Notes: generated from the sequence alone by a model not told the origin. Shown: positions 2,745 to 58,581, numbered from the stretch's first letter. The stretch is 64,000 nucleotides of DNA from Trichoplax adhaerens (GCF_000150275.1 NW_002060947.1:5371229-5435228), one strand, 5' to 3'. Made by a program: numbers and translations.

Positions 2745-5700
2745 ATGGTAAGAATTCTTATCAAAGCCTAGTTATCATGTTAATGATTTTAAGCCATGTT
2801 CTATTTCTTATTTTATTGATGTCTCACTGTAATCGATCTAATAAATAGTAATCATCACCTTCACATTTCAAAGTTTATAAACATCAGACAGCTTTCTTTC
2901 TTTCTCACAGTTTTATCAAGCGTAGCAAAAAATTCGATCTCGATATGTTGAACTAAGTCAATGTTTAGAAAATTGTCTATCGATTCCACTCAGTCTAGAA
3001 TACAATGTCTACGAAGACTATTTGTTGCCTATCACCGCCCTATAAAATGATTAGACAATAATGTGAAGTACGGTGGTTATTTCAATCAACCATGAAAGAT
3101 TAAACCTTAATCGATTTAACAATTTTTTTCTAATTTTGCTACTTTTAATACCACTACAATGTTTCAATCGATTCAAAGTTTAACATTATTACATGCGAAT
3201 TTGCAAATGTTGCATACTTTTCATAATGGCTGCATGAGGGAACAATGCAGTTCGTTTAAAGATTTCCTTCCTTCGTTAGCCAATTATTGTTTTTGCCATT
3301 CCCTTTTCTACTTAAATGTGACAACAATCACTTAGAAGTTGTTATCCTAACTAATACACTTGAGCCTTGTCAGAGATTGAAATCTAAAACGGAGTTCATT
3401 TGCTTACAATTCAATCTTCTAGTATGGTTTTATACATCGTGCTTTACAAGATTTAATTGTACGCCAATATGGAGAAAAAGAATGGAAACGCATCATGTAA
3501 GTAAGAAAGGTTTTGTTTTCATTAAGATAATAATCAAGCTCTAGGTCATATCTACAGTAGAAATGGATTATCATCATAAAATACTACACCATCAATTCTT
3601 TTTGAATAAAATTCATCCATTCTCTCGAAAACTTTATGAAGTGATGATAGGCTACTATTTTGTAGTGACTAAAATATTGACTAGCAGCGGAATATTTTCC
3701 ATTTTTTTTATACTTAAGGCCTTGTACTACGATGGCACATGATAGCAAAGAGCTTATTGAAGTCTTTGCAATGCCTGATTATTCATGCGCCCCTGTTTAT
3801 TAAGGATACATCTACCGCTACACCTACATGGCTAAAGTAGTTTACTAGTCAAATATTTTCGCGCTTTTAGATAACTGGCTGATACTATTTATGTAATTAA
3901 TCCTTAGCAAGGTTTACCTCCACCCTTGTGGAGAATGCTTATTTGTGAGTTGAAGAATTAGTAATATCTCATCATTTTCTCAACTCGTCATTAGCCTGTA
4001 GAATAGCTACAACGATAAGGCCATCATTAGCATATATAGTCGCAATTCAAAGACAGCCATTTCGTGTTCTATTTCGTTTGAAGTGGTTGTTCTTACGCAA
4101 ACATCTTATCGATCATCATAATGTATTACAATCTATGTGTTCATACAGCTTGCATTTGACTAATATTATTAAGACTTGAACAAATTATCTTAGGAAATGA
4201 ACAATATGATCTCATCTGGTTGAAGAGATAACTTGATTATTCTAATAATTAGCAAGATTATGGATAATGCAACTTTACAATACATATTGCTGTACATAGT
4301 ATCTGACATTTCCTTATCGATTTAGAAAATTGAATAGCCAGAGTAGATATAGTTCTAAATCGGTATAACGAATTAATTCTGAAGCATTCATGAAATCTTT
4401 CACATGTTATTCATTAAAATAATCATCGATATGATGTTATTTTTGTAATTTTACAGTATTGACAACAATTCACTATCACGATCAGTATGATTTGTTTATA
4501 AAGTGCTAGACTATTCGGCTATTTCTCTTCATCAGACTTTCAGTCTTTTTGCAACAGTTTTAATTCTCCATCTAAATAATCATGCTCAAAAATAGTCATT
4601 CTTTGGTGATAGTCGAAGTTTAAATACCATGTAGTTAAAGAAAGTTTCCTAACCTTTTCAGGTTAATAATATAATCACATCAATTTCTATCATATAGGCT
4701 TTATGTTTTATAGATTTTATAGGTTTACAAGACCGTCTAAAATCGATAATTTAGATAATTCTATATTGTTTTCCATGATTTACACGCATTTTTATGATTC
4801 TAATGATAATATTTAAAGTAGTTGCGTTACCAGCTACTCATACGTGGCAGAACTATCTTAACAGTGTTATTGTAACTAGATTCTGTTACGTTGAATTCAA
4901 AAATTAATAAATAAATATTGTTATTGATAATTGATGATTATAGTGATAAAGCTGGTATACAAGAAGAAAGCCGAGCTTTCTTACTACATCAAAGCTACGA
5001 TGATGCATTAACTGTTAAGTTGGTAGCGACCGCTTGCGAAGTTTTAGGTAAATTAATTGTCATAATTGATTAGTAATTCACCGTAATCGATCAAGTAGAA
5101 CCTAATGCTAGTCGCTTTTATCGTTCTTAATGATATTAATTTCATTCAATTGTGTAACAATTTATACTGGCCCATTCAGTCATGATTAATACCTACGTAT
5201 ATTAAAATGGAATCGTAATACTATGATAACAGAAGCTGTATTGGCAAACCTACATTCGTATACATATACTTATTTTCTAGTCAATCGAAGAATGGTAATA
5301 TCATTCATTAAGCTTTAATTTACATATATAGTTTAGTTTATAACCTTTAGTCATAAAGTTTGAATTTAATTCTCCTCAACTTACATTTACAGCTGTTTTC
5401 GTCATCGTTGTCCAATCATCTACATGTACCGATTAAATTAGATTGATAATTAATTAATAAGGGTCGATGCCTAGTCATCAACGTTATGATAACCCAAACT
5501 CAACATGATAAAGATCCAATAGGCGATTGCAATTATTTCTGATAAATCTATAATAAAATCGTCATACAAAGTACTAATTGTCCCCAATATATCAAATTCG
5601 ACTAGAAATAAACACTAAGTATTCATTTCGACTTTTATACTAACCGTTATCGCAATCTAAACCGGCTAGTTCATTTTCGTTCCTATGAATATACTCTCAA

Positions 5701-8700
5701 GAACTTTATAATTAACCATTCATTTAGCTAGGTCATAATACATCTGTATTAAGCACTTAAGAGGGGATAAAAACTAGTATAGCTTTGCGGGGTATACCCA
5801 TGTCTTAGACAATCGACCTGGCGGAACGGAAATAAGTACCAGTACTTGCTAAATCGCTCAGCTCTACTCCTTAACTTTATTTATACCATATTTTATATTG
5901 TCTATCTAACTAATTACATCTATTTGCATATGTTCACCTTGAAGTACTGGTATTGCTATTATTTATGGATTTCTACTTTTAAATAATGTATTGGTTGTAA
6001 TCAAAAATGACTTTATATAAAATTTTTATATTAGCAAGTATCATTAAGGTTAGTAAACCAGGTTCAATATGAATGCATCTATACCGACTATCACAACCTA
6101 GTTAAACAATATTATATTTACAGTAAGTTATTAGGAAAATAGTCTTAGTTTAATTCTGTTAAAACCTAATTAATTTGGAAAATGTCTAATTTGGTGTATA
6201 ATTTATGACGTCAGAAATGAATGATTAATTAATTAATGGAAAGGCAAGCAAAAGCAATTATCCCTCGCATTAGTATGTGGGTAACAGTTTATGATTAATA
6301 ATTAATGTCAAGCAGCAATGCTAGAAGATTATATTTTTGTATTTCATAAGTGCAATCTATTCCAAATTTAGTATTTTGACGGCGATTGCATAGGCTGATG
6401 CTTCTCAAATCTACTGTGCTGAGTAATAAAGCAGGAATAATACCAAAATCCATCATTTATATTTTGAGTTATTTAAAATGTATTAAAATCATAGCCGACT
6501 AGATCTAGGGTACTCATTTTATAATAAATACTCATGAAATCCCTAGATTTTTAGTTTTAAATTGTAAAATTGTAACCTAAAGTCTACAGAAATCAGAACA
6601 CTACTCCCACGGCAAACTGATAAACAACATAAAATACTCGAAGTTCGCGTATGATAAAGATACGTTGATAGGATCGAGATAAGTTCAGAAAGAAAACGTT
6701 AAATTCTTGTTGTGGTTGTACGTCAGTGTTTGCATTTCTGTAGTTTACTACAATAAATATTATAACGAGACACATCACCATCGACAAAAAATTAATAAAA
6801 TATAAACTTTTATATTTTCATTGACACATCGATGAGTGTCTCGTCGGACCAGGATTTGAAGGTTTTGATCAGAACACAAACAAGAAATACTCGAAGTACT
6901 CGTCTGCATTGATCGTATAAACGAACCTTAAGAAAAATCTCTCACTCTTTATCATCATTAGTACATTTATAGCAAGAAAACATTAACTTCTCTCAGTTGA
7001 TGAAATTGATTCATTTTCATACATTAACTACATATTTTAGATATTTACTGGACATATGTGTAATAAATCATTTATCAGATAGTGCGTATAGATTGTTTTC
7101 CACGTACCTGCAGTTGTATTAATTACCATTGAATAGTTAAAAATTTTAGCTGTTATGTTTGCTATTATAAATGTTGAGGAAGAATAAATTTATAAATTTA
7201 ATTACATATTGTGTATAGTATCGTTTACTTCAATGATAATATCGGTATAGGCTCAGCGATAATTAATATATAGTTAGTAACATCGATTTTCTAGAATCTA
7301 GCGAACACGTTATAATTATAAGCTATTGAAAGTATTATTTGATAAAAAAATTCTATAATTTAAAAATACTATACATATTGCAATATGTTTCATAGGCAGC
7401 AGAATGGAAGATATGTTGGAGAAATTCGGAGAACATTTCTTCCAATATTGTGTAGATAATGGTTATGATCGCATCTTACGGGTATTAGGCAGTACACTAT
7501 ATGACTTCTTATTTAATTTAGACGCTCTACATGATCATTTAGGGTCTAGCTATCATGGTATGAATGCACCATCATTTCGTTGTACTTCATCACTCGATGG
7601 CAATATCATTTTGCATTATTATTCTCTACGACATGGTCTATATCCAATTGTCACTGGTATAGTTAAAACCGCAGCAAAACAAATTCATAATGCTGAAGTT
7701 AAAATTCAAGTGATATCAGTTTCAACAACCAGTAAAGGTAAATGCCATGTTCAAATGTTAATATCCCAAGCCAATAGTTCCAGTTCTAATGCTAGTTTTA
7801 TCCAAACAACCGCACCTCAATCACCTGTACGATTTAATCGATCATTATCATCACCACCAGCATTTAATTCCAATACCGCCATCACAACGAATAATAAAGT
7901 ACGCATTAAAGTTGGAACGTTTTGTCAAGCATTCCCTTTTCATATTGTGTTTAATCGTGATTTAAAAATAACCCAAGCTGGCAATTCAATCCGTCGTGTA
8001 CTCAAATTACCAGCAGATTTACCTACTGCTAATATTCATTTCAATACTTTATTTCAATTGGATCGTCCACAAATGAGATTTAACTTTAAAAATGTTATCA
8101 GCCATATAAATATTGTTTTCATTATCTCTACAATCAATGAATTATCAGACTCAGCAGCATACCAACATCAACCACAATATACTAATCATAGCCAACAACT
8201 CCATCGACAACAAAGTTGCGAAAATTTTGATAATTCTGCAACAGATGATACGAGTAATGGTAGACATCGTCACAATAGTCAGAGTGGAAACTGTGTTTCT
8301 AATACTATCAAATTAAAAGGTCAAATGGTTTATGTTCATGAATCTGATAGCATGTTATTTCTGTGCTCGCCAAGGTTTAGTAATCTGGAAGAATTAACAC
8401 AGCAAGGATTCTTTCTAAGCGATTTTCCTATCCATGATACAACTCGTGATGTTGTGCTAATGTCTCATATCCAGCGTAATCGTCGTGATTTAGTTCAATT
8501 ACGTGAACAAGCTACTAATGAATTACAAATATTGGAAATAAAATTAAGGGCAGATAAAAAACGTACCGACGATTTACTCCATTCTATTTTACCAATTCGT
8601 ATTGTCAATCAACTACGTTTAGCTCCTCGAGATCCCATTCATGAACGTTATGCCATGGTTACGGTACTTTTTAGCGATATCGTGGGTTTTACAGCATTAT

Positions 8701-11700
8701 GTTCATCATCAGATATTGATCCATTGCAAGTTGTACGTATGTTAGATGAATTATACCTGAGCTTTGACGAATTGTGCAATTTTAACGATGTCTACAAGGT
8801 AAGCTGAACCAAGTTATATATGTATCATAAAATGAGAATCGCTGCGTAAATTTGTATATTTTGGAATATCAAAATTATTACCTACGCTAAAATATTCATG
8901 TACTTCTCTAGTTGTGATAGAGAATCCGATAGCGTAGTAAGAATTGATTTAGTAGCTATAGAGATGGAAACAAATATAATTTAGTAGGACAGCGAATTTA
9001 TTATTGTGTGTTGTGATCGTGTAAGATTGAAAGTAGTTACTGTAGGTAAGTTGCTAGCTGTTGTAAAATAACATGAAACATGAGTAAAAATCATTAACAA
9101 TCATCACAGAATAATGGGTAACTGTAACAATAATAGAAATATGAACTAGATATCACTAATACTTATACCTATGAAATAGAGCACATATGGAGAATAGTAA
9201 CGTAGAATATGCATACTGTAACAGTCAATATTAGATCATTGAAAGCAGTGATGGTAAGGTAATGGGAACCATGCGTAACTAAATGCGGTAATTTGTATTC
9301 GTATAAAAGTGTGGAAAAACTGCAATTGACCTTTATCTTGAAGAGTAATTAGCCAAAATAATGGTACTGTATAATCTGCATTAGTGTAATTTTTCCTTTA
9401 AGTCTGTGATCTTTAATGATTAAGTGGCAGTTTATATAGCTGCAGCTTATTGGGATAGCGAAATATCTGCCTTGCTAATATATTTAAAGTAAGATAGTTA
9501 TTAGTTTCGTAGCAAATTTTACAGCTGTGTTTTTATATTTGTTGTAAGATATTTCTTCAACCTCACGAGCTTAAGATATGAAAGTTAAAGTTATCCTTGC
9601 CTCAATAGCAATTTTTTTATAGCTATAATTTATCACTAACTGAATAGGTGGAAACGATTGGCGATGCGTATATGATAGTTAGTGGTGTGCCTGATCCATG
9701 TTTCAATCATGCTAATAAGGTAATAAGTATGGCATTCGATATGATGGATGTGACCAAAGGAGTCCTATCGCCGGTAGATAAATCGCCTATTAAGGTAAAA
9801 GTTATAATATTTAGATATCATTAAGCGAATTAGTGTAACCATATCGCTTAAATTTTCTATTATCAAATGAGTATTAACTACCAGTACCGATAACGATAAA
9901 CTATTATCTTAACCATAACTATCCACAGGAGCAATATTTTAATTATAAGATAGCTACTAAATTGCGGTAAAATGGATTTAATTTCAGATTCTACTAGTAT
10001 CATCCGCAGCTCTATACACGAATTTTATTAAATGCTCCAATCATTGATTATATAATTACTAACAAATGTGATTAATTAATGGGAAAGTATGACAATTAAA
10101 AGTCGTTGAAAGAAATAGAAAACATTAACAAGTATAACAAAAACATCTTAATAGAGCAGCAAGTTTCGATACAGTACAATGATGAGTTAATTCAGAATTT
10201 AGTAATTCAGTATCAGAGATTATTTTAATCATTTAAAATAATTACACCTAGAGTAGAGACTTTATAATGACACTTGACATAATTTACACATGTTTGTAGA
10301 CCGTAATTGCATCTTAAGCTTCAGTGGCTTACTAGGAGTGAAATATTTCTTTATTAATAGTGAATAGGAGAATAGCACTAGCAGTTAAATAAATAATATT
10401 TTTATTCTAGCCATAAGGTTTAAGGCAATTCGTAAATCTCTGTCTACTAATTAATCCTATTTACACTTACATTTTCGCACTTTAAATACCACTCAGCATT
10501 ATCGACCTCTATTCTAAGGTTGTACGGTACTAAATAAAATAAATAATTTCAATTAGTATGGTAGAGGCTTTATAACGATGCTTGATGTGATTAACTCATA
10601 CTCGTAAACTATAATTACATTTTTAAGTTTTGGCAACATACTAGAAAAGAAATTTTACGATAATAACGGTGAACAAAAGCATTACATTAAAGTTAATAAA
10701 ATGAAATCCTATTTTTACCCCGAGGTTTAAAGGCAATTAGAAAATCCTGGCTATTTATCAAACCTATTTGTACTTGAATTTTCGTACTTTAGAAGCCTCT
10801 CAGTATTATCTGTTTTTTATTATAAGACCGTAAGATATCTAATAAAATAAGTAATTTTCAATTAAGAATAAAAGCTACGTAACGTTAGCTTTCTACTGAT
10901 GAGCTGATATAGTATGTTATCGATTTTTCTACATCCTAATATACTAAATCAATGAAAAAATTTCAATTACTATTGCAAGCTAAAGCGTAATTAGAAAACG
11001 CTAGCCGTTGATCAATCAAGCGATCTAGGGTGTTATCTAAATCTTTATGTACAGCTATAACTTACTAAATAAGTCAAATAAGTTTCCATCAGTATTTTAA
11101 ACTGCTAATCAAATCGGCCAATCAGAAATTGAATTTTTAATCCTTTTCTATCGAAATCCACATTTAGATCAGAATAGGTATCCATTCCGGTCCTGCTATA
11201 GCTGGCGTGGTTGGACAGAAAATGCCTCGATATTGCTTATTCGGTAGTACGGTAACTAATGCAAGTAAAGTTGAATCTGGCAGTCAAGAGGGAAGAATTA
11301 ATATCAGTGAAACAACTAAAATGTAAGAAATGTTATAATCATCATCAATACAACTTTAACAATAAGTCTTAGTACAGTAGAGTAAATGATATCGCTTGAC
11401 TTTGAGTTATTGAGATAGCGTACCTTTGATATCTGATATTTTTGACCTTTCAACAATAATTCAATCTAGGTCGATTGCAGATACAACTCCCTACCTTTTT
11501 GAACAAAATTATAATCAAAGCCTCAATATGCCTTGCTACTTCATTGATCTTGACCCAAATAACCTATCCCACGATAGCCAAAAACGAACTATGACGCGTA
11601 ATCTATCGATTGATCCTGCACTAAAACAGGGCATTTTCCGATCTCCTAGGCCTAGCCCACCACAAACGCCAGGCGAATCACCAGTAATTACGCCCCCAAT

Positions 11701-11776
11701 GTCACCAACATCTCCACATTTAACTAAAATCTTGTTAGATATTTCCAATTTGCCCGCTATTAATTCTCAACCGTGA
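2745..11776 (+). CDS. Soluble guanylate cyclase subunit (gene 1): alpha-type catalytic domain with intact heme-binding H-NOX; about 730 aa, 7 coding exons
   Basis: Spliced model: ATG 2745-2747 (ATG|gtaaga, tentative); 3423-3496 ([24 protein letters not shown]); 4944-5047 ([34 protein letters not shown]); 7396-8798 ([45 protein letters not shown]); 9648-9794 (VETIGDAY); 11168-11322 ([24 protein letters not shown]); 11470-11776. All introns GT-AG, phases consistent, total 2193 nt = 731 codons. Confidence 0.93.
10400..10891 (+). repeat. Diverged direct duplication of about 180 bp in a gene 1 intron (copies about 10400-10583 and 10710-10891)
   Basis: Collinear shared blocks: aggttt(a)aaggcaatt, cctattt, ttttcg.acttta, ctcag.attatc, aataaaataa.taattt(t)caatta, taacg.t(a)gctt. 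Confidence 0.75.
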
Positions 11777-17845: not shown

Positions 17846-17879
17846 CACTTAAATTTGTGATATTATTTGATGGAAAACG

Positions 17880-19400: not shown

Positions 19401-19485
19401 AATGTAGTGTGTTGTTCGTCTGCTTTTACTTTACCATCACGTTGAGTGGTGCCTAATCCGTTTAAATGAATAAAAATAATCTCTA

Positions 19486-21598: not shown

Positions 21599-21609
21599 TA
21601 CGACTCTGT

Positions 21610-30400: not shown

Positions 30401-31418
30401 ATTTACAATCCCGATAGTACGTATGTATTCGCAATTTCGTACATCGAATATTACTAAAATGAATTGCGTAGTCAAATCGGTCAGTAGAAGAAAACTGATT
30501 AGCTTTTTATCTATACCAAAGCTGATTAACCTCCATAATTAACAGTATTATAAGCAACCTTGGATAAATTGGAATTCGTTTTTAATGCAGTCCGTTAAAC
30601 TACAAAACTAGCAATGTTATTAGGGTATCCAATTTCGTACTTAAAATTTTTTTCAAAACCTATCGGTAAATATGCAGTCGCTCTTACCGTATCCTTTGCA
30701 ATTTGCTTACCGCTCATTTTAGGTGGAAACTATCGGAGATGCTTATGTCGTTGCTGGAGGTCTAGAACAAAAAAGTAATCGCCATGCTCATGATGTTTGC
30801 TACATGTCCATTGGTATGCTTCTTGTTTCACAAACTGAAAAATCCCATGATGGTCAAATTATTAAAGTATGCGTTATTTGAGTGCTGTAATTTGCATGCA
30901 TTGATTGCTATTTAACGCTCCGCTTTAATACATTTTAGATGAGAATCGGAATTCATACTGGCAGTGTTGTGGCCGGTATTGTTGGATACAAAATGCCACG
31001 CTACTGCTTATTTGGTAATAACGTAAGATTGGCTAATAAAATGGAAGCATGTAGTCTGGCTGGAAGGATCAATGTTAGTCCAACTACATACAAGTAAGTT
31101 TACTAACTTCTAATCTTTTGGTAGTTAATGAAAGAATATCATTGCTATAGTTTCCTCTGCTTTAATTAATGAATGAACTAAATAATCATCGTTTGACTGT
31201 TGGATCACCCATACTGCTACATTAGGACATATTAATTATATAATTATTATTCACTTTGATATCTATCCAACAGGCTTGTACATAGCAGTAATGAATTTAC
31301 CTTCGAAAAGCGAACACCTGATTGCTTACCGAAAGATTTCCCAACTCAACCTGGTGATACTTGCTACTTTTTAAATGTTGGTAATCAAAATAATATGTTA
31401 GAAGATCGTCAGTCTTAG
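27488..31418 (+). CDS. GUCY1A: Soluble guanylate cyclase alpha subunit (gene 2); about 614 aa, 6 coding exons identified, N-terminus may extend upstream
   Basis: Exons 27488-27558 ([16 protein letters not shown]); 27669-27778; 28197-29416 ([40 protein letters not shown]); 30723-30866 ([14 protein letters not shown]); 30939-31093 ([37 protein letters not shown]); 31274-31418 (LPKDFP..CYFL, TAG). Catalytic and C-terminal segments closely match vertebrate alpha1 ([28 protein letters not shown]). Total 1845 nt = 615 codons. Confidence 0.93.
29417..29858 (+). repeat. Tandem repeat, 4 copies of about 85-125 bp, starting at the donor of the intron after the large exon of gene 2
   Basis: taagat..tttt.ccta, ttgatatttatg.aat, gattatagtt, gctag.tta and tgcctt recur. 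Confidence 0.85.
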
Positions 31419-40400: not shown

Positions 40401-41144
40401 AGACAATTCTAATCCTATAAATACGTCACTTAAGTGATGACACAGATTGCATTACAAATAATATCAAAGTTGAAATCGATGTAAGGATAATCAAGACTTA
40501 TGTTGCCATGGAAATCAATTTTTAGTATAACAATATCTATTATTTTTAGTAGAATTGAGCCTTAACGATGAGAATAAGGAAGTTTATCAGTTTCAATTCG
40601 AGAGCTTATATCAACAATAGGACAGGCACTCGCAGAGATGATCACCATATTAAATATTTATTATAATAATATAGATAAATTCCTTTATCCATTATCTCTT
40701 TAGTCATTCCTATTATTATTATTTTTGACCTTCTTTATCGTAAAGAAGACTAATTGATCTAATTAAAAGCATTAGAATACTATTCATCTTGAAGCTATTC
40801 TTTCTGCTAAATATTCCATAAGGTTACTAATTCTAAAAGCTACCTTTAGCATTGCACCATAAATCATTAAAAATAACAATAAGGATTCAGGCTGCTGTTT
40901 ATCTATTTTCATTATTGTTTCTTTCTGCTACTGACAAAAAGTTCTTGTATATTATTTTTTATTCTATTTCTAATGATTATTTTAAAGAAACCCATATCTA
41001 TATAAGTTTACTAGAGTTCTCCTCTTCCATTTCCATGTTTTCTTCCTTTTTCAAGCTTAATTAAACTTATGCGAACATAAATTTTGAACGTAGAAATTTT
41101 GGCTGTTGATATTTCCAAGCAGTTCGAATCGTCCTGTAGTCATT

Positions 41145-44100: not shown

Positions 44101-47100
44101 TAGGAATGTCAAATAGCAGTTATTTTATACAACGTAAAGTCTACGCTGACGATGTTACGTTCGAATTGGTCAAGACTGCATCTGAAGTTTTAGGTTAAAC
44201 TTATTAAGCTTTGCTGTAAATTTAAATACATTAGTAGCTCGTAGCTTTAGTCTGTATTAGCCGTCACAATTTCTTTACACTAATCGGATTACTTACTAGC
44301 GACTGCACTTGTAAATAATAATTTATCTTGTGCGTTCTAAAAATTATAATTTATCGATATGAAGTTGTGAATACTATAAACGTTCTTCTATCTCTTTGCC
44401 CTTAGTCAAACAATTATTTTTATTAATTAATAAAATAAGCATCAGTAAGGAGGATGATAAAAATCTATTTTTTATATCAATTTAATACTTTCATGAAGTA
44501 TAGTATTCATCATTTCCATGTATGAGAAATTGCTATTATTGCATAAATTTTTACTAGGTTGGATAACGTTAAAAACTTAATTTACCCTTTAAATTTTCGT
44601 TAAAGCAGTAAAATGCAAATTTAATTAAACCTTCAAAATCAAAAGTATCTAAATTTGTAAAACATGAAAACTATTTGACAGGCTTACGTAGAACTACTCT
44701 ACTTTAGACTTGTTAAAGTACTATACTTACGCGCTATTCAGTACTATAAAAACAACTTTAAATGTACATTCTGATATAAAAATTGAAAACTTTATGGTTC
44801 ATCAGATGACGACTATCGGACTAAATCAGCTCTAGACTACCTAAATTATAGCTTCATCTACTGGTCGATAGATGACCTTGCACAGTAGCAGATGTGATTA
44901 ATAATTATAATTTATAACGGAAGATTTCATTCCACATTAGCAAAAGTTTGATATGTATGCAGTTTGAGTAATGTACAAATTAAAATCTATTTTAAAATAA
45001 TGATACTATCAAACCTTGCTTGTTTAATAACATAAAATTACTTTAATTGATATAAAAAGTGAAACGTCCTTACTTTAGTACAGTATACAAATTTAGTTGC
45101 TTGTATTTTGCTTGATTAGTACCATAATGCCATATAAAAATTGTTGGACTGAGAAAGTATTAATTCAATCTTTTCGATATCTGATTCCTCTTGGATATTC
45201 ACACTAACCATTTCACAATTACACGACATCGCAAGATTGAAGGATCAATAATCTCTTTAATAAATTTACATAATGAGCATAGATTTTATCGTATGGTACA
45301 AATTAAAATGTTTCTCTTTTCTTAATGACCAAATCATGGCGCAGGTATCCAAGTTAATGACTTACTGGAAACGTTTGGCCGATTTTTTGTTAGTTTTTGC
45401 GAAGAACTAGGATATAAAAGAATTCTTGAAGTAATGGGAAGTAATCTATTCGAATTTATCAACAATTTAGACAGTTTACACGATCATTTAGCCACAATCT
45501 ATTCAGGAATGAAGGCTCCATCATTCCGATGCAAATACAACAGCGATAATGATACCATAACACTTCATTACTACTCTACTCGACCCAACTTAGAATATAT
45601 TGTTGTAGGAATCATTAAAGAAGTTGCTGAAAAAATTCACTTAATTGATATTAACATGGAAGTAGTTAAAACAAGACAAAATCAATTAGACGATATCCAA
45701 TTTTTAATCTATTCCAAAAATCCAGCAAAAGCAAGAATCAAATGCCATGATCGATTGCGGCGGTCTATTGCTAGTAGCACCAGTAATGGTATTGCTGCCG
45801 ATAATACTTCTACAACATCGACTAAAGCTGTTAGCTCAACTACTATATCATCCATCCCTATCTATCAACAACGTCAAGGAAAGCAAACGAAGAATTCTGA
45901 GACATGCAATTTTATTGCGCCGACCACTTTTTGTCGAGCTTTTCCTTTTCATGTCTTATTCGATCGAGATTTATCTATACAACAGTTGGGCCATGTTATT
46001 GAACGAATGATACCAGGCTTTTATTTAGGAGACTTGAAAATGGATAAAATATTTAAAATTGTGAGACCAGTTATTCAATTCGACTTTCATTCTATTCTAT
46101 CTCATATTAATACCGTATTTGTTTTAACCATGAAGCCACTATGCCCAAGTTTTCTAGAGCAATATCTGCAATGGTCTGACGTACGATTTAAAGGCCAAAT
46201 GATATATTTAGAGGAAAATGAAATGATGCTCTTTCATTGTTCAGTTAGTATATCGAGCTTAGAAGAATTGCGAAGCCACGGGTTATATTTATGCGATATA
46301 CCACGTTATGATGCTAGCCGGAATGTTATTTTAAGATCTGACCATTTTCGCCATGATTATCAAATGATGTTGCAACTAGAAACATTAAATGATCGCTTAG
46401 CTGATACTTACCAGCAATTACAAAAGGAGAAAGATTTAACGGGGGAATTACTATATTCAGTCATGCCTCCTTCTGTAGCGAAACAGCTTCGACTTGGCCA
46501 CAAAGCTGTTCCAAGTAAACATAGTATGGCATCTGTAATGTTTTGTAAAGTGTCAACATTTCAAGATATAACAACAAATATTGAGCCAACGAAACTAATA
46601 GCGTTGCTGAATGATATATATATTACATTTGATCAGATTATTGATCGCCAAGGTGATGAATTCTATAAGGTAAATTAAAATTTTAGACTCGAATGCACTT
46701 AATGGTGTAGTTTTATATCGTTACAAGCTAAGTACCATTGAAAATAAGATCTTTGCTATATTCTCAGTCCATATAGGACTATAGATATTTCATAAACTAT
46801 GTTAATGGTCGAAAAATTTGTTATAATTGTACCACGATCAGGTAGAAACACTGGGCGATAAGTATATGGTAGCTAGTGGAATACCGCAATATCAATCAAC
46901 ACACGCTAAAAGTATAGTTAAAGTAGCTATTGAAATGATGAATACGTCGCAAAAGCGAGGAAATAAGAAGTTATCCACTATGGTAATTCTGATAAATGTT
47001 GTTATCTAAAGGCATAATGTTCATGAGAACGTTTGTAAATTTGCTAATTTTTTGTTCCTATAATTTGAAAATAATCTCTNNNNNNNNNNNNNNNNNNNNN

Positions 47101-48073
47101 NNNNNNNNNNNNNNNNNNNNNNNNNNNNNTTCAGATGTAGATGAAACTGCAGTTTATGGGATTAGAGACCTTTACTTCATACCTACAGCAATATACCTGA
47201 GTTGCCTTATTGACATGAACTACTACGACTATCACTTTTGATTACTGTACGCCAGAGTTTGGATTCTATTAATCTTAGTAGATGATATGAAAGAACAATG
47301 GTTGAAAATTTCATAGTAAATATAGCTACAATAGTCGCTATTTATCTTATTCAAGTATTGAGAGTGATTGAACCAGACTGCATCGTAAACTGTCACCAAA
47401 CTCGACAATTTATACAATCTGTTACCATATAATTTGATACTGAAATCAGTTTATAAGCCTTAAAGCTTATTAAGCAATAAACGATATTAGTAGACCATAG
47501 CGATTTTGTAGAAATAAATATCTAATTTTTAATTTCCTTGTCGAAAATATTTTATTAGTTGTCGATAGGTATCCATAGTGGTGAGATCGTAGCTGGAGTA
47601 ATAGGTGAAAAATTGCCTAGATTTAGCATATTTGGAGATACAGTGAACATTGCAAGTAGGACACTGACCACAGGAGTACCGGGTGTTATCAATATCACTG
47701 AAGATACTTTTAGGTAAATTTCTGTCGGAACTAACATTCTATGTAGACCTAATATTGTGCCATTCGATGTATAAATGTTTATTTTAGGAGTATTTTGGTT
47801 GATCTATAAACGATAACTTTTTTGTTTAATTTAAATAATGCCTAAATTCATATTTTTTATCATTCTAACACTCTGCAACGTCATATCTTCCAATGTAGGT
47901 GCCTAGATAGCCCTAAATACTTTGAAAATAAGTATTTATTATCATGCTTAGGCCCTGTAAATATGAAAGGGCGCTCTACTCCGTTAACTTGTTATATTGT
48001 ATCACATCAAGCTAAATCTCCAGCATCAACTGCTAATGGCCAAACAAATTCTTGCCCATCTACTATTAATTAG
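41145..48073 (+). CDS. GUCY1B: Soluble guanylate cyclase beta-type subunit, divergent paralog (gene 3); about 657 aa, 7 coding exons
   Basis: ATG|gtaagt 41145-41147 (tentative); 43918-43991 (HGLINHALSLLVKRNFGDEAWDSI); 44093-44193; 45345-46669 (NLDSLHDHLATIYSGMKAPSFRC, HYYSTR, FCRAFPFH); 46842-46982 (VETLGDKY); 47559-47713 (LSIGIHSG..LPRFSIFGDTVNIASR); 47899-48073 (CLDSP..GPVNMKGR). Total 1974 nt = 658 codons. An assembly gap lies inside one intron. Confidence 0.92.
47080..47129. other. Assembly gap (50 N) inside an intron of gene 3
   Basis: Run of N visible in the sequence. Confidence 0.99.
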
Positions 48074-50289
48074 CAACCCCTAGTATATATTTTGAAAAAA
48101 ATAAACAGATTTATTGATTATGTAAGATGATATACCCTATAATTCAATAATTTTACAATTTTTCTCTTATTTAGGCCAAATGCAAAATTAATAATTTAAC
48201 ACTTCCCTCATTTTTTCATATACTTTTACGTTATGTATTGCATTTCCTACTAAATTATTGCAGTAGTCATATAATACGAATATAGAAATGATTGCTACCC
48301 CTTGTATGAAGGATTGCTCTATGTAAATGCTGTAAAGAAGATACGAAAACTTTTTTTGACCACGACTAACATACCTGACTTAACTGGTTGAGTTCTATGC
48401 CAATTTGTATTTCTTAAAAGTACTGTACTGCATGTCGAACAACTCAATCTAATATCGTTATTCAGCATAAACATGCAGTATTGTAAGTGGTTGTTATAAA
48501 ATATCACATCAACTTCATTTGGATAATTTTTATAAATTGCTCATGCATAAAGTTCTGGTTGAATACAAAATTGAATACTCTTTACTTTAATTAAAATCAT
48601 CATTTGATCTAATTTCATGCGTGGCTACAGCTACTTTTATTTTTTATGTCATATACGTACAGACTTAATAGTTAATTATCATTATGTATTTAATAATTTG
48701 GCATCCTGTAGTATAATATTATATGCAATGTTTAGTCGTATATAATATTAGATACAGAAACTAGGGATGTTCTCCTACATTTTTGCCTGATTGAGTAATT
48801 ATCAGGACCCATGAACGGATCTCGACTTCAGTTTACTTAGTATACTGCTACAGCAAGATCTTGTAGCTTAGTATTGGTACACTAAGATCATTTTTAGGCA
48901 TTTCATTTAACAAATAAAAAACAGATTATCGAATTTTTGCGTTCCCATATTGAAATACTAAGGAAGGGAGTAATAAAAGATACTCATATCTAATTGGACA
49001 ATATTCAACTGATGCTTTCCTGCCTAATTTTAACTACCAACTAGGGTAAAAAAACGTCAAGTTGGTCTATCATAATAGATGAAGCATGACAAGCTAGCGA
49101 GTAATTGGTCCTGTTCTAGGTCCAATATAAGATACAGTATTACAGGTTTCAGTTTTGTTACCATTACTACTAAATCTGCTAAGAGTCCAAATAGTGATGC
49201 GCAATATGTCACCGAGCCAAACCGCAATAAGCCCGTAAACTGTATTCTAAGGATGGCTATCTATGTAAATAGGCATTTATCGTAGTCTGATGACTAATTT
49301 CCCATATTAATATTTTACGCTTTCAAATGGCTGGTATTTACTAAAGTCCTAACATGGTTGCCAAAAAGTTAATATCTCATTCCATATATTATGTTATTCT
49401 CATTTATATGTACCTGTTATGAAGCAATATTTACTTCCTTGAAATTGACGACAGTAATTTTACAGATTTCTATAGATAACTGCCTATTCTGATCAATAAT
49501 GGCAATTGATGTTGAAGCCGCGGTGGCACGCTATAAATTGTTCAACTTTTCAATTGCATTTTGTTTTGAATTCGACAACATAGTCTAAGTAGTTGCTCTG
49601 ACTTACTGAAATTTGAAGATGGTTAATACTTGAATGGAAATGCAATCGAATGCCAGGTAAGTAGGGTATCAAACTTATAGTCTTCATTTCTGTCTGTAAA
49701 CTATTACAAACATCAGTTTGTAAATACTACAGTACAAGCACGGTATTCCTAACATTTGAAAGTTTAAAGCTATCGATTGATGCTTATAACGTACCAGATG
49801 CAATGATGGCAGGATATTATGATAGTGAAAGTAAGGTTTGTAGATAGTCATTTATGTGATTGCTGTTTACAAAAATAAGAAATACAGGTTGATTCAATTT
49901 TTCTTGCTATCTCAGCTTAGTGATATGACTAGCTATTGCATAAATGGCCTGGTTGTAAGGTAGACTACTTGTATACATTGCATCTACGTTGAATGAAATG
50001 CTATTTCCTTTAGTCGCTGTACAGTAGTCTGGGCCATGTCAGTTTGCTAGAATGATTTAATGGCATGCCGCTGATAAAAGGATTAAAAGTATTGCTTCAA
50101 CTACGGTAGTCTAGACTATAGTCATGGCTTAATTAATTAATTATTAACTCAGAGATGAATGAAAGACAGCAGTTGTAAACTATATAACAAATTATTAGGA
50201 GCCAAACATGTAATCGATATAACGATCATATACGGCACGCTATGAATTTGAAAGTGACTTTACATATTTCATGACGCACGAAACCATCG

Positions 50290-52441: not shown

Positions 52442-55400
52442 ATGGTAAATGATCCTTGTAGAGCTAGTACAACTAATTTTTTTGCCTTTCTTGCTTGCTT
52501 TGTAGATAAGATTGATGCTAACTTAAAGCTATAACTTAAGCGGACTAGTAGAGACAGTAAAATGCTGCCTTTCATTTGACTAAAGAATGATAAAATATCT
52601 CTGCTGACGCTTTCAAGTTATAAAGTCATCACGAGTCAAGTGTATGCTTGTAACGGAGCACTTAACTTCTTGACAGTAGTGATCCTGTAGTGTACATTTT
52701 TTCTTTTTATCATACTCAAGAGATGATTTTCAATTTTTATTTCTGTCGTGAGAATCACTAGTTAGCAGAACTTTTAGCCTTATGATCAATCATCAATAGC
52801 ATGGAAAAGTAAGGGCTATTTGATGCACTTTTGTTATTCAATTATAGTACGGATTTATTAATTATGCACTGGAGTTACTGGTTGTCCGAAAATATGGACA
52901 AGAAACATGGAACGAAATCAAGTAAGTTCTCTTTCTATCGACACTTATATAGCATTATGAATAATTGTAATTTTAATCTTGCAAAATATATGCAAGGTCG
53001 TTATCATCTTGAATGTGCCATCTCATGTTTACTAGTTAGTCAATCAAGACACAACAAAATTATTTTGCTGTATACAGCATACCCTACTTGAGTTTGCCTA
53101 TGTTGACAGTGAGATGAAATTAAAGTGTTCTTGGAAAAATGACAAATCATTCAATCGCTTTACTAATTTGTCATCAAAAGCAGCTATGATACAATATTGG
53201 TTGATTCTGTGCATTCGGCTCTCTATAAAGTGTTAGTTATTTCATTTGCTACATACTTACGTTTGATCAATCCATTGCTATGCAGTGAAAGTTTAATAAG
53301 TTTTTGAACGTCGTTCAATATCCAAAAAACATGGCACAGCAATAAATTATTCACCTAAAATTACTCTAGTAATATCATAATCAATCCATCATCATTGCTA
53401 ATACTTTACATATCTGCCTTAAAGTTACGATATCAACAATTTTTCTCCGAAGCTCAATTTCGGATCGACGCTAGATCGCTAAGATGACTATACTTTTCGA
53501 ATTGTTATACGAGTGCAGCATAATGTAAAATAGACAATACTGTTATAATTTGCTTTTTTAATCTAATTTTACTATACTATTGTGCTTTAGCTTCAGAATT
53601 AATTTACTTGTCTTAGTGAAATTGTCTATTGGACCATTAAAATGATCTTTACCTAATCATCGATTCTTTTTTTATTATTATTTGTTAGGAAAAAGGCCGA
53701 AGTGGATATTGAAAAGCATTTTCTACTACGAATGATTTATGATGACCAAGTTACCTTCGATCTGGTTAATGTCGCTTGTGATGTTCTAGGTTAGCTTTCT
53801 ACAGATATAAACTATGAAGGGAAAATTAAATGCATATCTGATTGTTTTTTTCTGACAACGACGTTCAATTTTTTGTGGTTCAGGCAATTTTTTTCTTTTC
53901 TATCAGTTATTCGATGTTCATCAATACTTCTTAGTTTAATAATTAATTATTTTCCCTATTGAATAGAAAATATAGCTTACATTCAGCTGCATTTATTTGA
54001 GTTTTTGCCATTGCAAGTTTCTATTTTGTTATGGTATCTTTGACAGTCAATCAACATTATTGCTGAGAAATACCAACGCCGGCAGTAGTTGACTTGCTAA
54101 TTTGATATACAGTAGTTCTATAAGCTATAATATGTTGACTAAGTTGCATCGAACTAGCATACAAGACTTTATTCATAATACATCAAACAATCTTAGCATG
54201 TGAGTTAGTTGTAGAGGAAAATCATTTATAAATATCGATGTATTCTTATCGTTTTATTTCAGAAAATTGTATTCAAATATTCGTTCTTTTATTTATTCGG
54301 CATACAATATGCCAAAAGTTTAACATATTAACAAAAATAATTGATCCCACTATTCCAATTACGTTAGCTTTCATATTACCAGTAACTCTGAAAACATCTT
54401 TTCGAATCGCATTCAAAAGTGAAAAGAGATTCCAAGAGAGTATTTAAACCATTGATATTATCTTTTGACCACATTCAGTCTTTCAGCTACAATTTTCATC
54501 AACATCAGAGAAAGGCATACAATTAGCACAGGATACTGATATCAAAAGTTTAAAGAATAAACGGAAAGAATTTATTTTTTAAGTTATTTTACGTTTAGAT
54601 CACTGATTGCTTGGTAGCCGGCTGTCTTGACTTGATAAAAAAATTCTAACTACTGTATTACAATATAGACGATAAGCGTATTTGTTTTAAGTATATCTTT
54701 CCGCGGCTAATAATTCTAAATCGGATTATCAAACTTTACTCACCGTAATAATTATCAGACAAAACCTTGTAACCAACACTACAAATGCCGTTATTCAACG
54801 ATTGTCAAATAATAAGTTAGTTAAATATTAATTCTTGATAAGTGGAGTTTTTTGTTGAATACATCATCGTATATTTAGGCTGCGTAGGTATGCATGCAGT
54901 CCACTAGAGCAAGTAGTTAATGTTCGTAAATTCCAGGTTGATCTGACAGACATATTAATTAAAATTTAATGCTAGTCGGCAAGAACTATTCTATAAGCCT
55001 TGATATAAATGCCGCACAAGTTATCAAAGAAGCCGCAAGCATCATCTTGTTTTGTTCATTTATTAATAAACACTAGTGTACTTTTCGGGTATCGTTAAAA
55101 AGTTGTAATTTACACATCCACCCCTCTTATCCCAAATATTTCCTTTATTTTCTTATCACGAAAAGCTGGGCTAGTTATTATCATCTAGATGGTAACTTTA
55201 CATACACAAATATATGAGTACAATATATATTAACTTTTAATTGACCCTCCAATTCATTGATATTCATGCCAATTTTAAATGGCATAAGCTCAGCAATTAG
55301 AACATCCAATACCATTTCTAGCTTAGATTTTAAAGCCGACGAGATTCAGGCTAAATTAACAATGCTATTATGACGACAAAGGAAAGATCTTTGGGTAATT

Positions 55401-58400
55401 ACTGAATGTTATTGGATAGCATTATTCATGGCAAAAGGCAATTAAAACCTAAATACTTGCTGACGCTGTATGACTTGGTGCTAAAATGCAGTGAAATGAA
55501 TGATATTATCTGCCAGCTTTACTACATTCGATCCCTGCTGCGAAAAACTTGACTTATTTAATTTTTATATTACAGCTTTTATATCATTGTAGATACCCCT
55601 GTAGTGCCTATTAGAAAATTAAGTTAATATGAAAATGTCCATCACTGACATTATTTATTTATCTTATCGTAGCTAATACGAATACTGTACAATTATATAT
55701 TTGCAATTCTACTCTTTCGTGTAGTCGCACATTATATACGAAAATAGTATAAAGAACAATTATTACGAATTCATGCTATAAGCTAGCTAGTAACGAAGTA
55801 CAGTTAGTAGAGATGGCAGGCGCCACTATTATTTATTTATCGCTCCAAGTCAAAATTTGGATAAATTGGATGTCTTAAATTATTCCTGTTAACTCACGTA
55901 GGACTACTCGTGACTGATACTATCGTACGGTGACTAGGCACGGAAAATTTTGACAGTGATTGACATCTAAGTAGATAGACATCAAAAATATAATTTACAG
56001 ACATTCGAACACGATGAATAACTGCTCAAAATGCTATGTAATTTCTCAGTCGCAGATCTAGCATTGCTTAATTCTGGAATCAATTACGCATAATCATCAT
56101 GTAAAATGCCCTTAATCATAAGTATTATAAAGATATGCATATGTAAATACATCCTATAAGTTCATTAGCATATGATGCCTCTCATCATTCACCTAACATA
56201 ATTCGTAAATGAAGAAAATCAATAAATAATACTATGAGTACGAGTATAATACTATATATATACCAATACTTTCACTAGGCTAAATTATACTCACTTTTGC
56301 ATAATTGATCCAGTATAACTTTATTTTAGCCCTTGTTTACGTCTTATATAAAGGTAACTTTTGTGAAATCGACTATATTACATTATTGTTTCTCATGATG
56401 CTTTATTTTTGTCAATTTAGGCCTATCACAAAATGAAATCTTGGAACAGTTTGGAGCAATGTTTTTTAAATTTTGTCAAGAATCCAATTATGACAAAATT
56501 TTACAGGTTTTAGGGGGTAGCTTAAAAGATTTCTTGTGTAACCTTGATGCTTTACACGATCATCTTGGAACTATTTATCCCGGAATGAGAGCTCCATCAT
56601 TCCGCTGTGTAGAACGATCTTCTGATGGTGCACTAGTGTTATACTATTACTCTTATCGTATTGGCCTGGAACATATCGTTATTGGGATAGTTAAAGCGGT
56701 TGCTAAAAAGCTGCACAACTGTCAAGTTGATGTAGTCATCGAGAAAACTCGAAACGAAACCGGAGATCATGTTGAATTTGCAATTCATATGAAGCCAACG
56801 GAAATTTCAAAATTGGATAAGAGGAAATCCATAATGTCTTTAATTGGCACACCTAACGACCTTGATGCTGCTGCCATGTCCGAAGATATGTTGATTGGTT
56901 CAAGCACCTTTTGTAAAGCTTTCCCTTTTCATATAATGTTTGATCGCGACTTAAATATCCAACAGGCAGGAACATCAGTGGCTCGTGTCATTCCTCATAT
57001 GTTAAATCAACAATTTAAATTTTCCCATCTCTTTGACCTGGTTAGACCACAAATGGAATTTAATTTCGATAGTGTTCTGTCACATATTAATACTGTCTTT
57101 GTGTTAAAAACTCACGATGGATTTTTAGATGTTAGCCAGTTAAAAAGTAGTAGTGAAATATTTCGAGCAAATAATCAATCCGTACTTCGACTTAAAGGTC
57201 AAATGTTATACATTAAGGAGTCTGATGTCATGTTATTCCTTTGCTCACCAAGCGTTGGCAATTTAGATGATTTGCAAGGTCGTGGTTTATATCTTAGTGA
57301 CATTCCAATTCATGATGCAACACGAGATTTAATTTTATTATCAGAGCAATTCAAGGCTGAGTACGAGCTAACTCAAAAATTAGAAGTTTTAACCGATGAA
57401 TTGCAAAATACGTATCGCAAGTTGGAAGAAGAAAAACGTCGCACTGATCAGCTACTCTATTCCATTTTACCGCCATCTGTTGCTAAAGAGCTACGACAAG
57501 GTGGTACTGTCGAAGCCAAAAAGTTTGATGCAGTTACTATCCTATTCAGTGGGATAGTTGGATTTCAGAAGATTTGCCAAGATTCAGAGCCCATGGTTAT
57601 TGTTAAGTTATTGAACGACATTTATACTGCCTTTGACGATAATATACGTAACGATGTATACAAGGTAATCGAGCAAGATATCCTGTAGTTGTAGATTACT
57701 TTCTGTAACATTAAAATGGTACTATTTCTTGTTAAAGTGTATTAATACAACCGTTGCTTTATTATACACGTATTTAATAGGTAGAAACCGTCGGTGACAT
57801 GTATATGATTGTCGGTGGTTTACCGAAACGTAGCAATACCCATGCTAAAAGCGTTGCTCTTATGGCATTAGACATGATACAACTTACTCAAAGGATTAAA
57901 GTCAACGATCAACCTGTTAAGGTACATTATAACCGTTCCTATCATTTTCTGATATGTTTTTATTACAGAGAAGGTATAAAATAGTTAATTATTCCACGTC
58001 TGTACATGTCTACTCATGCAGATTACTATAGGAATTCACTCGGGCGAAATTGTTGCTGGCGTAGTTGGCAAAAAATTACCTCGTTACTGCCTCTTTGGCA
58101 ATACTGTCAATATTACAAGTAGAACACAAACAACGGGCGCCGAAGGCAAAATCAATTTAACGGAAGTAACGCACAAGTAAGTATATATCAGTAGATAAAG
58201 CTTATACTGTTATAATTTTAAAAAATTCCTTGCTTGTTACTGAGGGCTAAACTTGCAACTTTTTTTTATAGATTGTTGTTGCAACCGCAATGTCAAGATA
58301 GTAGCTTCTGTTTTACCCAAAGAGAAGATTTGGTAAGAATGAAAGGTCGAAAAGAGCCGATGAAATGCTACTTTCTAGAACGGCATAATAAAAATAAAGC

Positions 58401-58581
58401 AGTCCATTTAATCATGAGAAATAGCTCAGCAAATAGAAGTTTCCTTTTCAAACCGAGAGAATCGGAATCGTCGCCTCAATTTACTCCTCCTTCACACGGT
58501 ACACCACCGCTTACTCTTCCAATGGAATGCCCATTCAAAACTGAAAAGCTATTGCAATCAGTGGTAAATAAACTAATATAA
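52442..58581 (+). CDS. GUCY1B: Soluble guanylate cyclase beta1-type subunit, canonical NO receptor (gene 4); about 675 aa, 7 coding exons
   Basis: ATG|gtaaat 52442-52444; 52848-52921 ([25 protein letters not shown]); 53689-53789 (FLLRMIYDD); 56421-57664 ([42 protein letters not shown]); 57781-57921 (VETVGD); 58022-58176 ([24 protein letters not shown]); 58272-58581 (MKGRKEPM). Motifs nearly identical to vertebrate beta1. Total 2028 nt = 676 codons. Confidence 0.96.

Follow-up and report, generated by a model that had tools for sequence, protein, structure and literature searches.

A linked array of four sGC subunit genes with complementary half-sites in Trichoplax adhaerens

What can be built from four genes for subunits of soluble guanylate cyclase (sGC), the nitric-oxide sensor, that lie one after another on a single strand, and how did they come to be neighbours? 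The window analysed here, a 64,000-nucleotide stretch of Trichoplax adhaerens DNA, carries four + strand sGC genes at 2745-11776 (G1), 27488-31418 (G2), 41145-48073 (G3) and 52442-58581 (G4), all of them intact: the frames are open, the splice sites are canonical and each coding length is a multiple of three. The original prediction had placed four same-strand genes here in the order alpha, alpha, beta, beta. That observation is confirmed: its ends are exactly the G1 start codon and the G4 stop codon, and every motif string that it quoted is present, including the pocket strings GLYPI, GWSYF, NLEYI and GLEHI. Its interpretation as a whole, a two-by-two kit of differently tuned gas sensors, is partly supported. 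We regard a linked locus of sGC subunit genes as the probable and best explanation of the window as a whole, with the protein-level steps argued by homology.

In a Pfam search each of the four shows the order H-NOX / HNOBA / coiled coil / class III cyclase. The big exons match HNOB, HNOBA and the first part of Guanylate_cyc (PF07700, PF07701 and PF00211; E 6e-65 to 8e-07) and the rest of the cyclase domain is in the downstream exons, giving all four the architecture of an sGC subunit. Intron positions and phases are identical across the genes, with common exon lengths of 74, 101-110, 141-147 and 155 nt besides the big exon. For G1, G2 and G4, splice sites were deduced from GT/AG, phase and homologues (P0001 and P0003 in the case of G1); the RNA check covered G3. 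Genome-wide there are seven sGC genes, a family published in 2020 (PMC7400543); the prediction had allowed that expanded sGC families in basal animals are known in outline. Four of the seven lie inside 56 kb of a 105-Mb assembly, for which a rough estimate gives a chance of ~5e-9; the order alpha, alpha, beta, beta is by itself not significant, since one third of orderings are sorted in this way.

Residues were aligned to beta-1 numbering, using P0082 as the reference (H105, Y135, S137, R139, E473, C541, N548, R552 and K593). The catalytic site comprises eight residues, alpha Asp486, Asp530 and Arg574 and beta Glu473, Cys541, Asn548, Arg552 and Lys593 (PMC6005667, Table 1). G1 and G2 are alpha-type: both metal Asp and the Arg are present, and the beta half-site's Asn, Arg and Lys are absent. 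G3 and G4 are beta-type, with the beta half-site present (Ser for Cys541 in G3) and the equivalents of the first metal Asp and Arg574 absent. None of the four is of the atypical or beta-2-like, homodimer-capable kind, with the complete site in one chain. The proposed complementarity of half-sites is real at these eight positions, and the expectation that no cluster subunit has a complete site alone holds by the same scheme. Judged by these residues, any alpha-type subunit with any beta-type subunit of the cluster would rebuild one site.

The same domain order, and an active site split between alpha and beta, are found in the NO-sensitive guanylyl cyclase of mammals (GUCY1A1 or GUCY1A2 with GUCY1B1; structures 6jt0 and 6pas). 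G2 and G4 agree with it in these residues and group with the alpha and beta-1 clades, respectively. G2, by clade and residues a canonical alpha-type subunit of about 614 aa, has coding exons at 27488-27558, 27669-27778, 28197-29416, 30723-30866, 30939-31093 and 31274-31418 (1845 nt = 3 x 615). It is 39-41% identical to vertebrate alpha-2, lies within the alpha clade (support 99-100), contains FSD, ETIGD, MRIG and NNVRLANK, reads D, D, R / R, K at the catalytic positions with no Lys593 equivalent, and ends in an alpha-type tail (of the form LPxxFP...CxFL). The YxSxR position reads SYHQR (SxHxR), with two of the three motif residues lost, and G2 is probably heme-free like canonical alpha subunits.

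Identity, clade and residues make G4, of about 675 aa, the beta-1 orthologue; it is encoded by exons at 52442-52444 (ATG only), 52848-52921, 53689-53789, 56421-57664, 57781-57921, 58022-58176 and 58272-58581 (2028 nt = 3 x 676). Its big exon is 100% identical to TRIADDRAFT_56641 (P0061) and 54-57% identical to bird and Nematostella beta-1, and G4 matches Manduca beta-1 (6pas_B) at E 7.6e-136 and the beta-1 of 6jt0_B at 3.7e-135. It falls in the beta-1 clade (99-100) with the heme motif present (His105 and YYSYR), and its catalytic positions (G, D, T, E, C, N, R, K) are exactly those of beta-1.

Beyond the counterparts of the mammalian enzyme, Trichoplax has an alpha-type subunit whose heme motif is intact (G1) and a second, divergent beta with Ser541 (G3). 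G1, about 747 aa and identified by its HNOB, HNOBA and cyclase matches and its residues, has coding exons at 2745-2747 (ATG only), 3423-3496, 4944-5047, 7396-8798, 9648-9794, 11168-11322 and 11419-11776 (2244 nt = 3 x 748). It carries the full heme motif (His105 and YYSLR) and the strings FSD, ETIGD, IRIG and VTNASK; its catalytic positions are D, D and R, with T and K at the sites of beta Asn548 and Arg552 and the MKG Lys absent. Catalytic exon 5 (IRIG ...; 11168-11322), which holds the equivalent of alpha Arg574 as well as the T and K, is 72% identical to a vertebrate alpha over 40 residues as against 54-55% to beta-1.

G1 lies outside the canonical alpha clade, in a separate one (98-99) with Montipora P0021, Nematostella P0025, Capitella P0052, Strigamia P0075 and proteins of ticks, a mite and a sea spider, which have His105 and YxSxR, T/K (or similar) for Asn548/Arg552 and no Lys593; the placozoan protein differs from them in its long linker, rich in Ser, Asn and Gln, and its tail, rich in Pro and Ser. 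As far as sequence goes, G1 is a member of an old clade that combines a full heme motif with alpha-type catalytic residues and has representatives among cnidarians and chelicerates as well as in an annelid and a centipede. The literature searched yielded no functional study of any member of the clade. In databases its proteins are mostly named "beta-1-like", and some are unnamed or generically named.

G3 is a divergent beta-type subunit of 657 aa, verified by spliced RNA contigs and residues, that spans 41117-48073. Its 5' exon ends in the ATG (41145-41147) and extends back to 41117 at least, as placed via the loose end of contigs; the other coding exons are 43918-43991, 44093-44193, 45345-46669, 46842-46982, 47559-47713 and 47899-48073 (1974 nt = 3 x 658). 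An assembly gap at 47080-47129 falls inside the intron 46983-47558, flanked by a donor (gt at 46983) and an acceptor (ag at 47558). All junctions after 43918 were found as GT..AG joints in X5, X7 and/or X11 contigs, and the in-frame GT..AG joint 46982>47559, over the gap, is present in RNA-derived contigs of all three of these runs, which come from three studies; the RNA check that the prediction had proposed thus shows G3 to be transcribed and correctly spliced. Catalytic exon 5 (LSIG ... PRFSIFGDTVNIASR; 47559-47713), directly after the gap-bearing intron, carries the Ser at beta Cys541, retains N548 and R552 and is joined in these contigs, and no G3 residue is missing relative to beta-1 in an alignment across that intron. 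A DNA-like X1 contig has 98 extra letters before 47133, and the true gap is therefore longer than the 50 N written. G3 carries His105 and YYSTR and the strings FCKV, LSIG, DTVNIASR and NMKG, and reads K (for Asp1), D, S (for Arg), E, S (for Cys541), N, R and K at the catalytic positions. The public model P0240 is 92-100% identical to the window exons, and this match, like that of P0061, identifies the species and the genes.

The description of the genes as four paralogs obscures their history. They do not form one recent expansion: they represent three old clades (canonical alpha, heme-motif alpha-type and beta-1, the last containing both G4 and G3) plus what is likely a placozoan duplicate of beta-1. 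The three clades were recovered at 98-100, whilst their order varies among trees. Alpha and heme-alpha are grouped at 92 SH-aLRT only, in a quick LG+G4 tree; heme-alpha joined beta-1 (84) or fell into a polytomy when smaller trees were built, and heme-alpha with beta-1 was not rejected by an AU test (p 0.36). G3 has a long branch (1.05-2.5; as an end branch in whole-length trees, 1.05-1.5 against 0.38-0.46 for G4). It was grouped in one tree with a nemertean beta paralogue (96) and is in a polytomy with anthozoan beta', and the highest-likelihood tree was the one with G3 and G4 forced as sisters. On these comparisons, G3 is most likely a fast-evolving placozoan tandem duplicate of beta-1. The three non-cluster genes (G5-G7) form a separate, basal-type clade; two were called complete-site and one degenerate. 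G7, on another contig, has all eight catalytic residues, and G6 has all seven that are readable, the tail with the Lys593 position not having been found. Drosophila atypical sGCs and GCY-31/GCY-33 also belong to a basal clade (PMC1435932), and the Trichoplax basal-type genes, unlike G1-G4, are outside the window.

By homology with alpha-1/beta-1, alpha-type and beta-type chains would dimerise through PAS and coiled-coil segments, and the dimer would form one active site and one pseudo-site. On the sequence, the two Asp that bind metal and the Arg for phosphate come from G1 or G2, and G3 or G4 bring the Glu and Cys (Ser) for guanine, the Asn for ribose and the Arg and Lys for phosphate. NO binding to the heme (His105 and YxSxR of H-NOX) would then switch the dimer on. 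G2 with G4 would make up the conserved, canonical NO receptor, in which G4 alone carries heme, and a G1-containing dimer would have two heme-competent H-NOX domains. Heme-binding-type H-NOX domains are likewise found on both partners of atypical pairs (GCY-35/GCY-36; Drosophila Gyc-88E with Gyc-89Da/Db).

The prediction had also read the four pocket strings as signatures of distinct ligand tuning, which the alignment does not bear out. In O2 binders a distal-pocket Tyr occupies the position of beta-1 Ile145 (bioRxiv 10.1101/2022.02.14.480389), and this Tyr is present in several atypical sGCs of the same alignment and in many of its complete-site sGCs (e.g. the Ptychodera '88E-like' P0396). All three heme-competent subunits of the cluster (G1, G3 and G4) have Ile, and G2 has Phe, so the cluster sequences read as NO-selective and G1, G3 and G4 give no sign at position 145 of differing gas selectivity. 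G1, unlike the O2-binding atypical sGCs, has no distal Tyr, and O2 sensing is therefore not predicted for it. The pocket string of G2 is unlikely to tune a ligand, given the degenerate YxSxR.

Which dimers form? Possibly, though we hold this tentatively, G1 and G2 both pair with G4, and G3 titrates alpha subunits as a weakly active or regulatory partner. Mammals have such an arrangement, with two alpha isoforms and one beta (alpha-1/beta-1 and alpha-2/beta-1). The slow evolution of G4 is consistent with this, as are the Ser at Cys541 in G3 and the alteration there of the conserved PRYCLFGN to PRFSIFGD. The same Cys541Ser change in human beta-1 lowers Mg-dependent activity and retains the NO response with Mn (PMC6005667), and predicts lower Mg-dependent activity for G3. 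Against this, Glu-Cys/Ser is the usual guanine-selecting pair of guanylyl cyclases according to the same review (PMC6005667). G3 also keeps E473, N548, R552, K593, His105 and YxSxR, is expressed and spliced in three studies, and has mostly synonymous coding variation (8/12 listed variants), which together argue for a working enzyme subunit.

It is doubtful that the genes instead work as two dedicated pairs, in which G2/G4 would be the canonical NO receptor with one heme, and G1/G3 a further receptor with two hemes and properties of its own. The presence of exactly two alpha-type and two beta-type genes would suit such pairs; in Nematostella too, alpha and beta-1 are accompanied by a heme-motif alpha-type gene (P0025) and a second beta (beta'), and, as a parallel, genetic evidence points to a dedicated alpha/beta-like heterodimer of the heme-bearing GCY-35 and GCY-36 in C. 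elegans (cited in PMC1435932). However, the polytomy of G3 and anthozoan beta' leaves their orthology without tree support, and G1 is not next to G3, with G2 lying between them.

The original proposal, that all four alpha x beta dimers arise in vivo, with differences between them in ligand tuning, heme count and activity, we consider unlikely. Each combination restores the eight residues, except for Ser541 in G3 dimers, and heme-competent H-NOX domains would number two in G1 dimers and one in G2 dimers; yet position 145, the sole established selectivity position, is Ile in G1, G3 and G4, and the pocket string of G2 is in an H-NOX domain that has lost YxSxR. Haplotype mis-assembly or pseudogene decay, suggested by the gap in G3 and by public models that differ from the open big exons (P0001, 87% for G1; P0240, 92% for G3), is highly improbable, as the big exons are only 34-47% identical to one another and hence not haplotype copies, the frames, splice sites and coding lengths are sound throughout, G3 is spliced over the gap in RNA-derived contigs, and orthologues of G1 (P0003) and G2 (P0121) exist in Placozoa sp. 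H4.

We return to the preferred reading, a linked locus of sGC subunit genes. The genes themselves are already catalogued; their linked, complementary layout appears to keep an alpha-beta neighbourhood that a sea anemone and a water flea also have, as do humans. Human GUCY1A1 and GUCY1B1 are both at 4q32.1 (PMC7946990), which places the genes for the two chains of one enzyme together as in Trichoplax, Nematostella and Daphnia, and we infer that this linkage is of shared ancestry; unlike the two human genes, the Trichoplax genes are four, all in one 56-kb array. In Nematostella, alpha-type, beta' and beta-1 genes form a same-strand tandem; in Dendronephthya, beta' is followed by beta-1; and in Daphnia an alpha-type gene is head-to-head with beta-1, an orientation unlike that in Trichoplax. 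The medaka alpha-1 and beta-1 genes are presumably also in tandem. No sGC gene was found within 10 kb downstream of the Nematostella heme-alpha gene, and the case for ancestral linkage therefore covers alpha-beta and not the four-gene array. Most likely, on the few genomes compared, the array descends from an alpha-beta neighbourhood that predates the placozoan, cnidarian and bilaterian lineages and grew by tandem duplication.

A more speculative version takes the array for the remnant of an sGC locus that, before these lineages split, already held a heme-free and a heme-retaining alpha beside beta, and proposes that the heme-retaining alpha forms two-heme NO receptors with a response unlike that of the one-heme enzyme. 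If so, a heme-retaining alpha-type subunit is hidden in the databases of cnidarians, annelids, myriapods and chelicerates, mostly as 'beta-1-like'.

The four soluble guanylate cyclase (sGC) genes G1 to G4 lie on the forward strand at 2745-11776, 27488-31418, 41145-48073 and 52442-58581 of the window, an AT-rich part (G+C ~30%) of the 105.6-Mb assembly (contig C1410:5371229-5435228). Its four largest forward-strand ORFs each span the whole of an HNOBA/PAS domain, together with the C-terminal portion of H-NOX and the beginning of a class III cyclase domain. Exons were placed by tblastn with public sGC proteins, and their boundaries were set by GT/AG sites and intron phases. The searches used single exons; whole chains were represented by the public proteins P0001, P0003, P0121, P0240 and P0061, and several of the database proteins compared are automatic models. 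The big exon of G4 is 100% identical to TRIADDRAFT_56641 (P0061) of Trichoplax adhaerens, and TRIADDRAFT_25317 (P0240) is the counterpart of G3. The public model of G1, P0001, lacks part of the big exon (87% identity).

All four genes follow one exon plan (71-74, 101-110, 1220-1403 [the big exon], 141-147 and 155 nt, then a tail exon) with intron phases 2, 1, 0, 0, 2, and the coding lengths of G1 to G4 (2244, 1845, 1974 and 2028 nt) are each divisible by three. In G1, G3 and G4 a separate 5' exon ends in the start codon (2745-2747; 41145-41147; 52442-52444, ATG/gtaag), and an intron of 0.4-2.8 kb splits the ATG from the residue-2 codon, as RNA-derived contigs confirm for G3. Unlike these three, G2 has its start ATG inside the first coding exon. 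G1 also has a long Ser/Asn/Gln/His-rich linker from H-NOX to PAS (7800-8330) and a Pro/Ser-rich C-terminal tail (11500-11776), both mostly common to its orthologue in Placozoa sp. H4. None of the 10 ORFs between the sGC genes scored above the curated Pfam cut-off.

Each exon was added as a fragment to an alignment of reference sequences that includes the bird beta-1 protein P0082 (619 aa), in which H105, Y135, S137, R139, I145, E473, C541, N548, R552 and K593 stand at these numbers. Of the catalytic residues, Asp486, Asp530 and Arg574 belong to alpha, and Glu473, Cys541, Asn548, Arg552 and Lys593 to beta (PMC6005667, Table 1). At these eight positions, in that order, G1 carries D, D, R, E, C, T, K, none; G2 carries D, D, R, E, C, R, K, none; G3 carries K, D, S, E, S, N, R, K; and G4 carries G, D, T, E, C, N, R, K. 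The motif strings quoted in the original prediction were all found in the four genes, and its rule is correct as sequence logic: no gene product has a complete site alone, and any alpha-type with any beta-type subunit would complete one. The usual guanylyl cyclase pair is Glu-Cys/Ser, and human beta-1 with Cys541Ser is less active with Mg, yet retains low, NO-responsive activity with Mn (PMC6005667). By analogy, Ser541 in G3 is expected to matter.

A full HNOBA domain is matched at seven places in the genome, namely the four window genes and one site each on contigs C1401, C1411 and C1414, in agreement with the seven sGCs already reported in Trichoplax and in Hoilungia (PMC7400543). The three outside genes, G5 to G7, form their own clade in our trees with vertebrate beta-2 and '88E-like' proteins. 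G7 has 8/8 catalytic residues and G6 all seven readable ones, and with such sites both look homodimer-capable. The degenerate G5 (C1401, ~1.219 Mb; L013:7627-8886, L016:1949-2528) is altered in both half-sites: it lacks the first metal Asp and has Ser at 541, Lys at Asn548 and Tyr in place of the proximal His105, whilst retaining Arg574 and Arg552. It may be an inactive or regulatory subunit. With the outside genes set apart, the cluster consists of exactly those members of the family that are predicted to need a partner.

The proximal His motif (LHDHL) is kept in G1 to G4. The YxSxR motif is intact in G1 (YYSLR), G3 (YYSTR) and G4 (YYSYR), and reads SYHQR in G2, which looks like a canonical alpha without heme. 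G1 combines an alpha-type catalytic domain with a sensor predicted to be heme-competent. The pocket strings that had been read as signs of distinct ligand tuning are residues 141-145, and position 145 is the distal Tyr site of O2-binding H-NOX proteins (bioRxiv 10.1101/2022.02.14.480389). In the same alignment residue 145 is Tyr in many complete-site sGCs and Ile in G1, G3 and G4, so on sequence these would be NO-type sensors, not O2-type ones, with no sign of divergent selectivity. The reading of G1 as an O2 sensor was likewise rejected for want of the distal Tyr at 145.

sGC, itself a drug target, is the principal NO receptor of animals, and it is textbook knowledge that a single beta pairs with two alphas. 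We consider G2/G4 to be the predicted canonical NO receptor, with G1 as an additional alpha-type and G3 as an additional beta-type candidate partner. Of three pairing models, one possible arrangement is the complete 2 x 2 combinatorial kit of the original prediction.

To place the four genes, we built trees, all by quick search. In three trees, G2 and its Placozoa sp. H4 orthologue fell within the alpha clade (support 99-100), G3 and G4 within the beta-1 clade (99-100), and G1 in a third clade (98-99) together with proteins from Montipora, Nematostella, Capitella, Strigamia, Medioppia, two ticks, a mite and a sea spider. With broader sampling this G1-type clade was sister to alpha (SH-aLRT 92), and the alternative of a beta-1 affinity was unrejected (AU p 0.36). 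The branch of G3 is long. The likelihood with G3 and G4 held together exceeds that of the free search, and the simplest reading is thus a placozoan tandem duplication of beta-1. For orthology of G3 with the anthozoan beta' genes, which form one group within the beta-1 clade, exon-wise trees gave a polytomy, and one join came with a long-branch warning. A sister relationship of G3 to a Tubulanus beta paralogue (96) likely reflects long-branch attraction, given the higher score of the G3 plus G4 tree. Recent paralogy of G1 and G2 is ruled out by their separate clades, and haplotype copies or mis-assembly of G1 to G4 by 34-47% identity and the RNA joints.

The RNA check that had been proposed for the gene models covered G3, with contigs from public runs compared against 43800-48150. 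A 1937-nt contig from run X5 has joints 43991>44093, 44193>45345, 46669>46842 and 46982>47559, all GT..AG. Joint 46982>47559 was also found in runs X7 and X11, from other studies, and joint 47713>47899 in X5 and X7; the G3 model is thus borne out by RNA. An assembly gap of 50 N occupies 47080-47129, with the splice donor after 46982 upstream of it and the acceptor before 47559 downstream, and the spliced joint across it places the gap within a removed intron and keeps the G3 frame continuous. The exon junction (KKLSTM/LSIGIHSG) falls at the same point as that of G4 (NDQPVK/ITIGIHSG), and no residue is lost at the gap in the beta-1 alignment. A gap that breaks G3 is ruled out by that alignment, the RNA joints and the coding length. 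Run X1 acts as genomic DNA of another strain, and one of its contigs adds 98 letters before 47133, so the true gap exceeds 50 bases.

The same contigs revise P0240. The first 179 letters of the RNA-derived contigs match 41117-41146, which makes the protein start MHGLINHALS rather than MDESFFFQQ; the latter is intronic (43891-43917), and the start ATG of P0240 is wrong. The big exon (45345-46669) is unbroken in RNA-derived contigs, including X5, and the internal intron of P0240 is therefore also wrong. Low-depth X7 contigs drop 81 and 76 letters within this exon (46032-46114, 46375-46452); these skips have CT..AC ends, lie partly in the Ser/Thr-rich linker and are absent from X5, and could be minor isoforms or assembly noise.

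Linked sGC genes occur in other animals. On Nematostella OW051994.1, the 3' end of an alpha-type gene (tail LPDGF...CHFL), a second beta-type gene and then beta-1 (P0060) lie on one strand. The annotation fuses the first two into a 1319-aa product with two HNOB-HNOBA-cyclase sets (L019:1-8458); the exons resolve this product into two genes, and MYGFVNRALQ at 3269 begins the second. Dendronephthya has beta' then beta-1 on the same strand, Daphnia pulex has beta-1 and an alpha-type gene head-to-head, and human GUCY1A1 and GUCY1B1 are both at 4q32.1 (PMC7946990). No sGC gene was found within 10 kb downstream of the Nematostella G1-type gene, nor any neighbour within 10 kb of the Capitella one; the Lottia alpha gene was too long for neighbours to show. 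The most economical account is a linked sGC locus, enlarged in placozoans around an alpha-beta core that may be very old.

The sGC family is already published and its genes catalogued, and the locus represents no novel type of system. In the library searched, we found no paper on the tandem arrangement, either TRIADDRAFT identifier or sGC synteny with Nematostella, and no report of half-site complementarity or of the G1-type clade. The locus suggests a possibly ancient alpha-beta linkage and, in a very simple animal, bears on the origin of the sGC alpha/beta division of labour, since it brings together a predicted canonical pair, an alpha-type subunit that has kept the motif for heme binding, and a divergent beta of young age.

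Every fully read member of the G1-type clade has His105/YxSxR and alpha-type catalytic residues. This conserved, unstudied subunit class could reveal the alpha subunit before heme loss. Public labels of the tick, mite, sea spider and coral members (P0332, P0334, P0340, P0358, P0021) are mostly 'beta-1-like', and Strigamia P0075 has a generic database name only; given such labels, name-based alpha/beta subunit counts for invertebrates may be off. The Capitella member P0052 (662 aa) spans 2406 bases (L022:10001-12406; Capitella teleta KB298688.1), which implies few or no introns compared with the placozoan and cnidarian genes.
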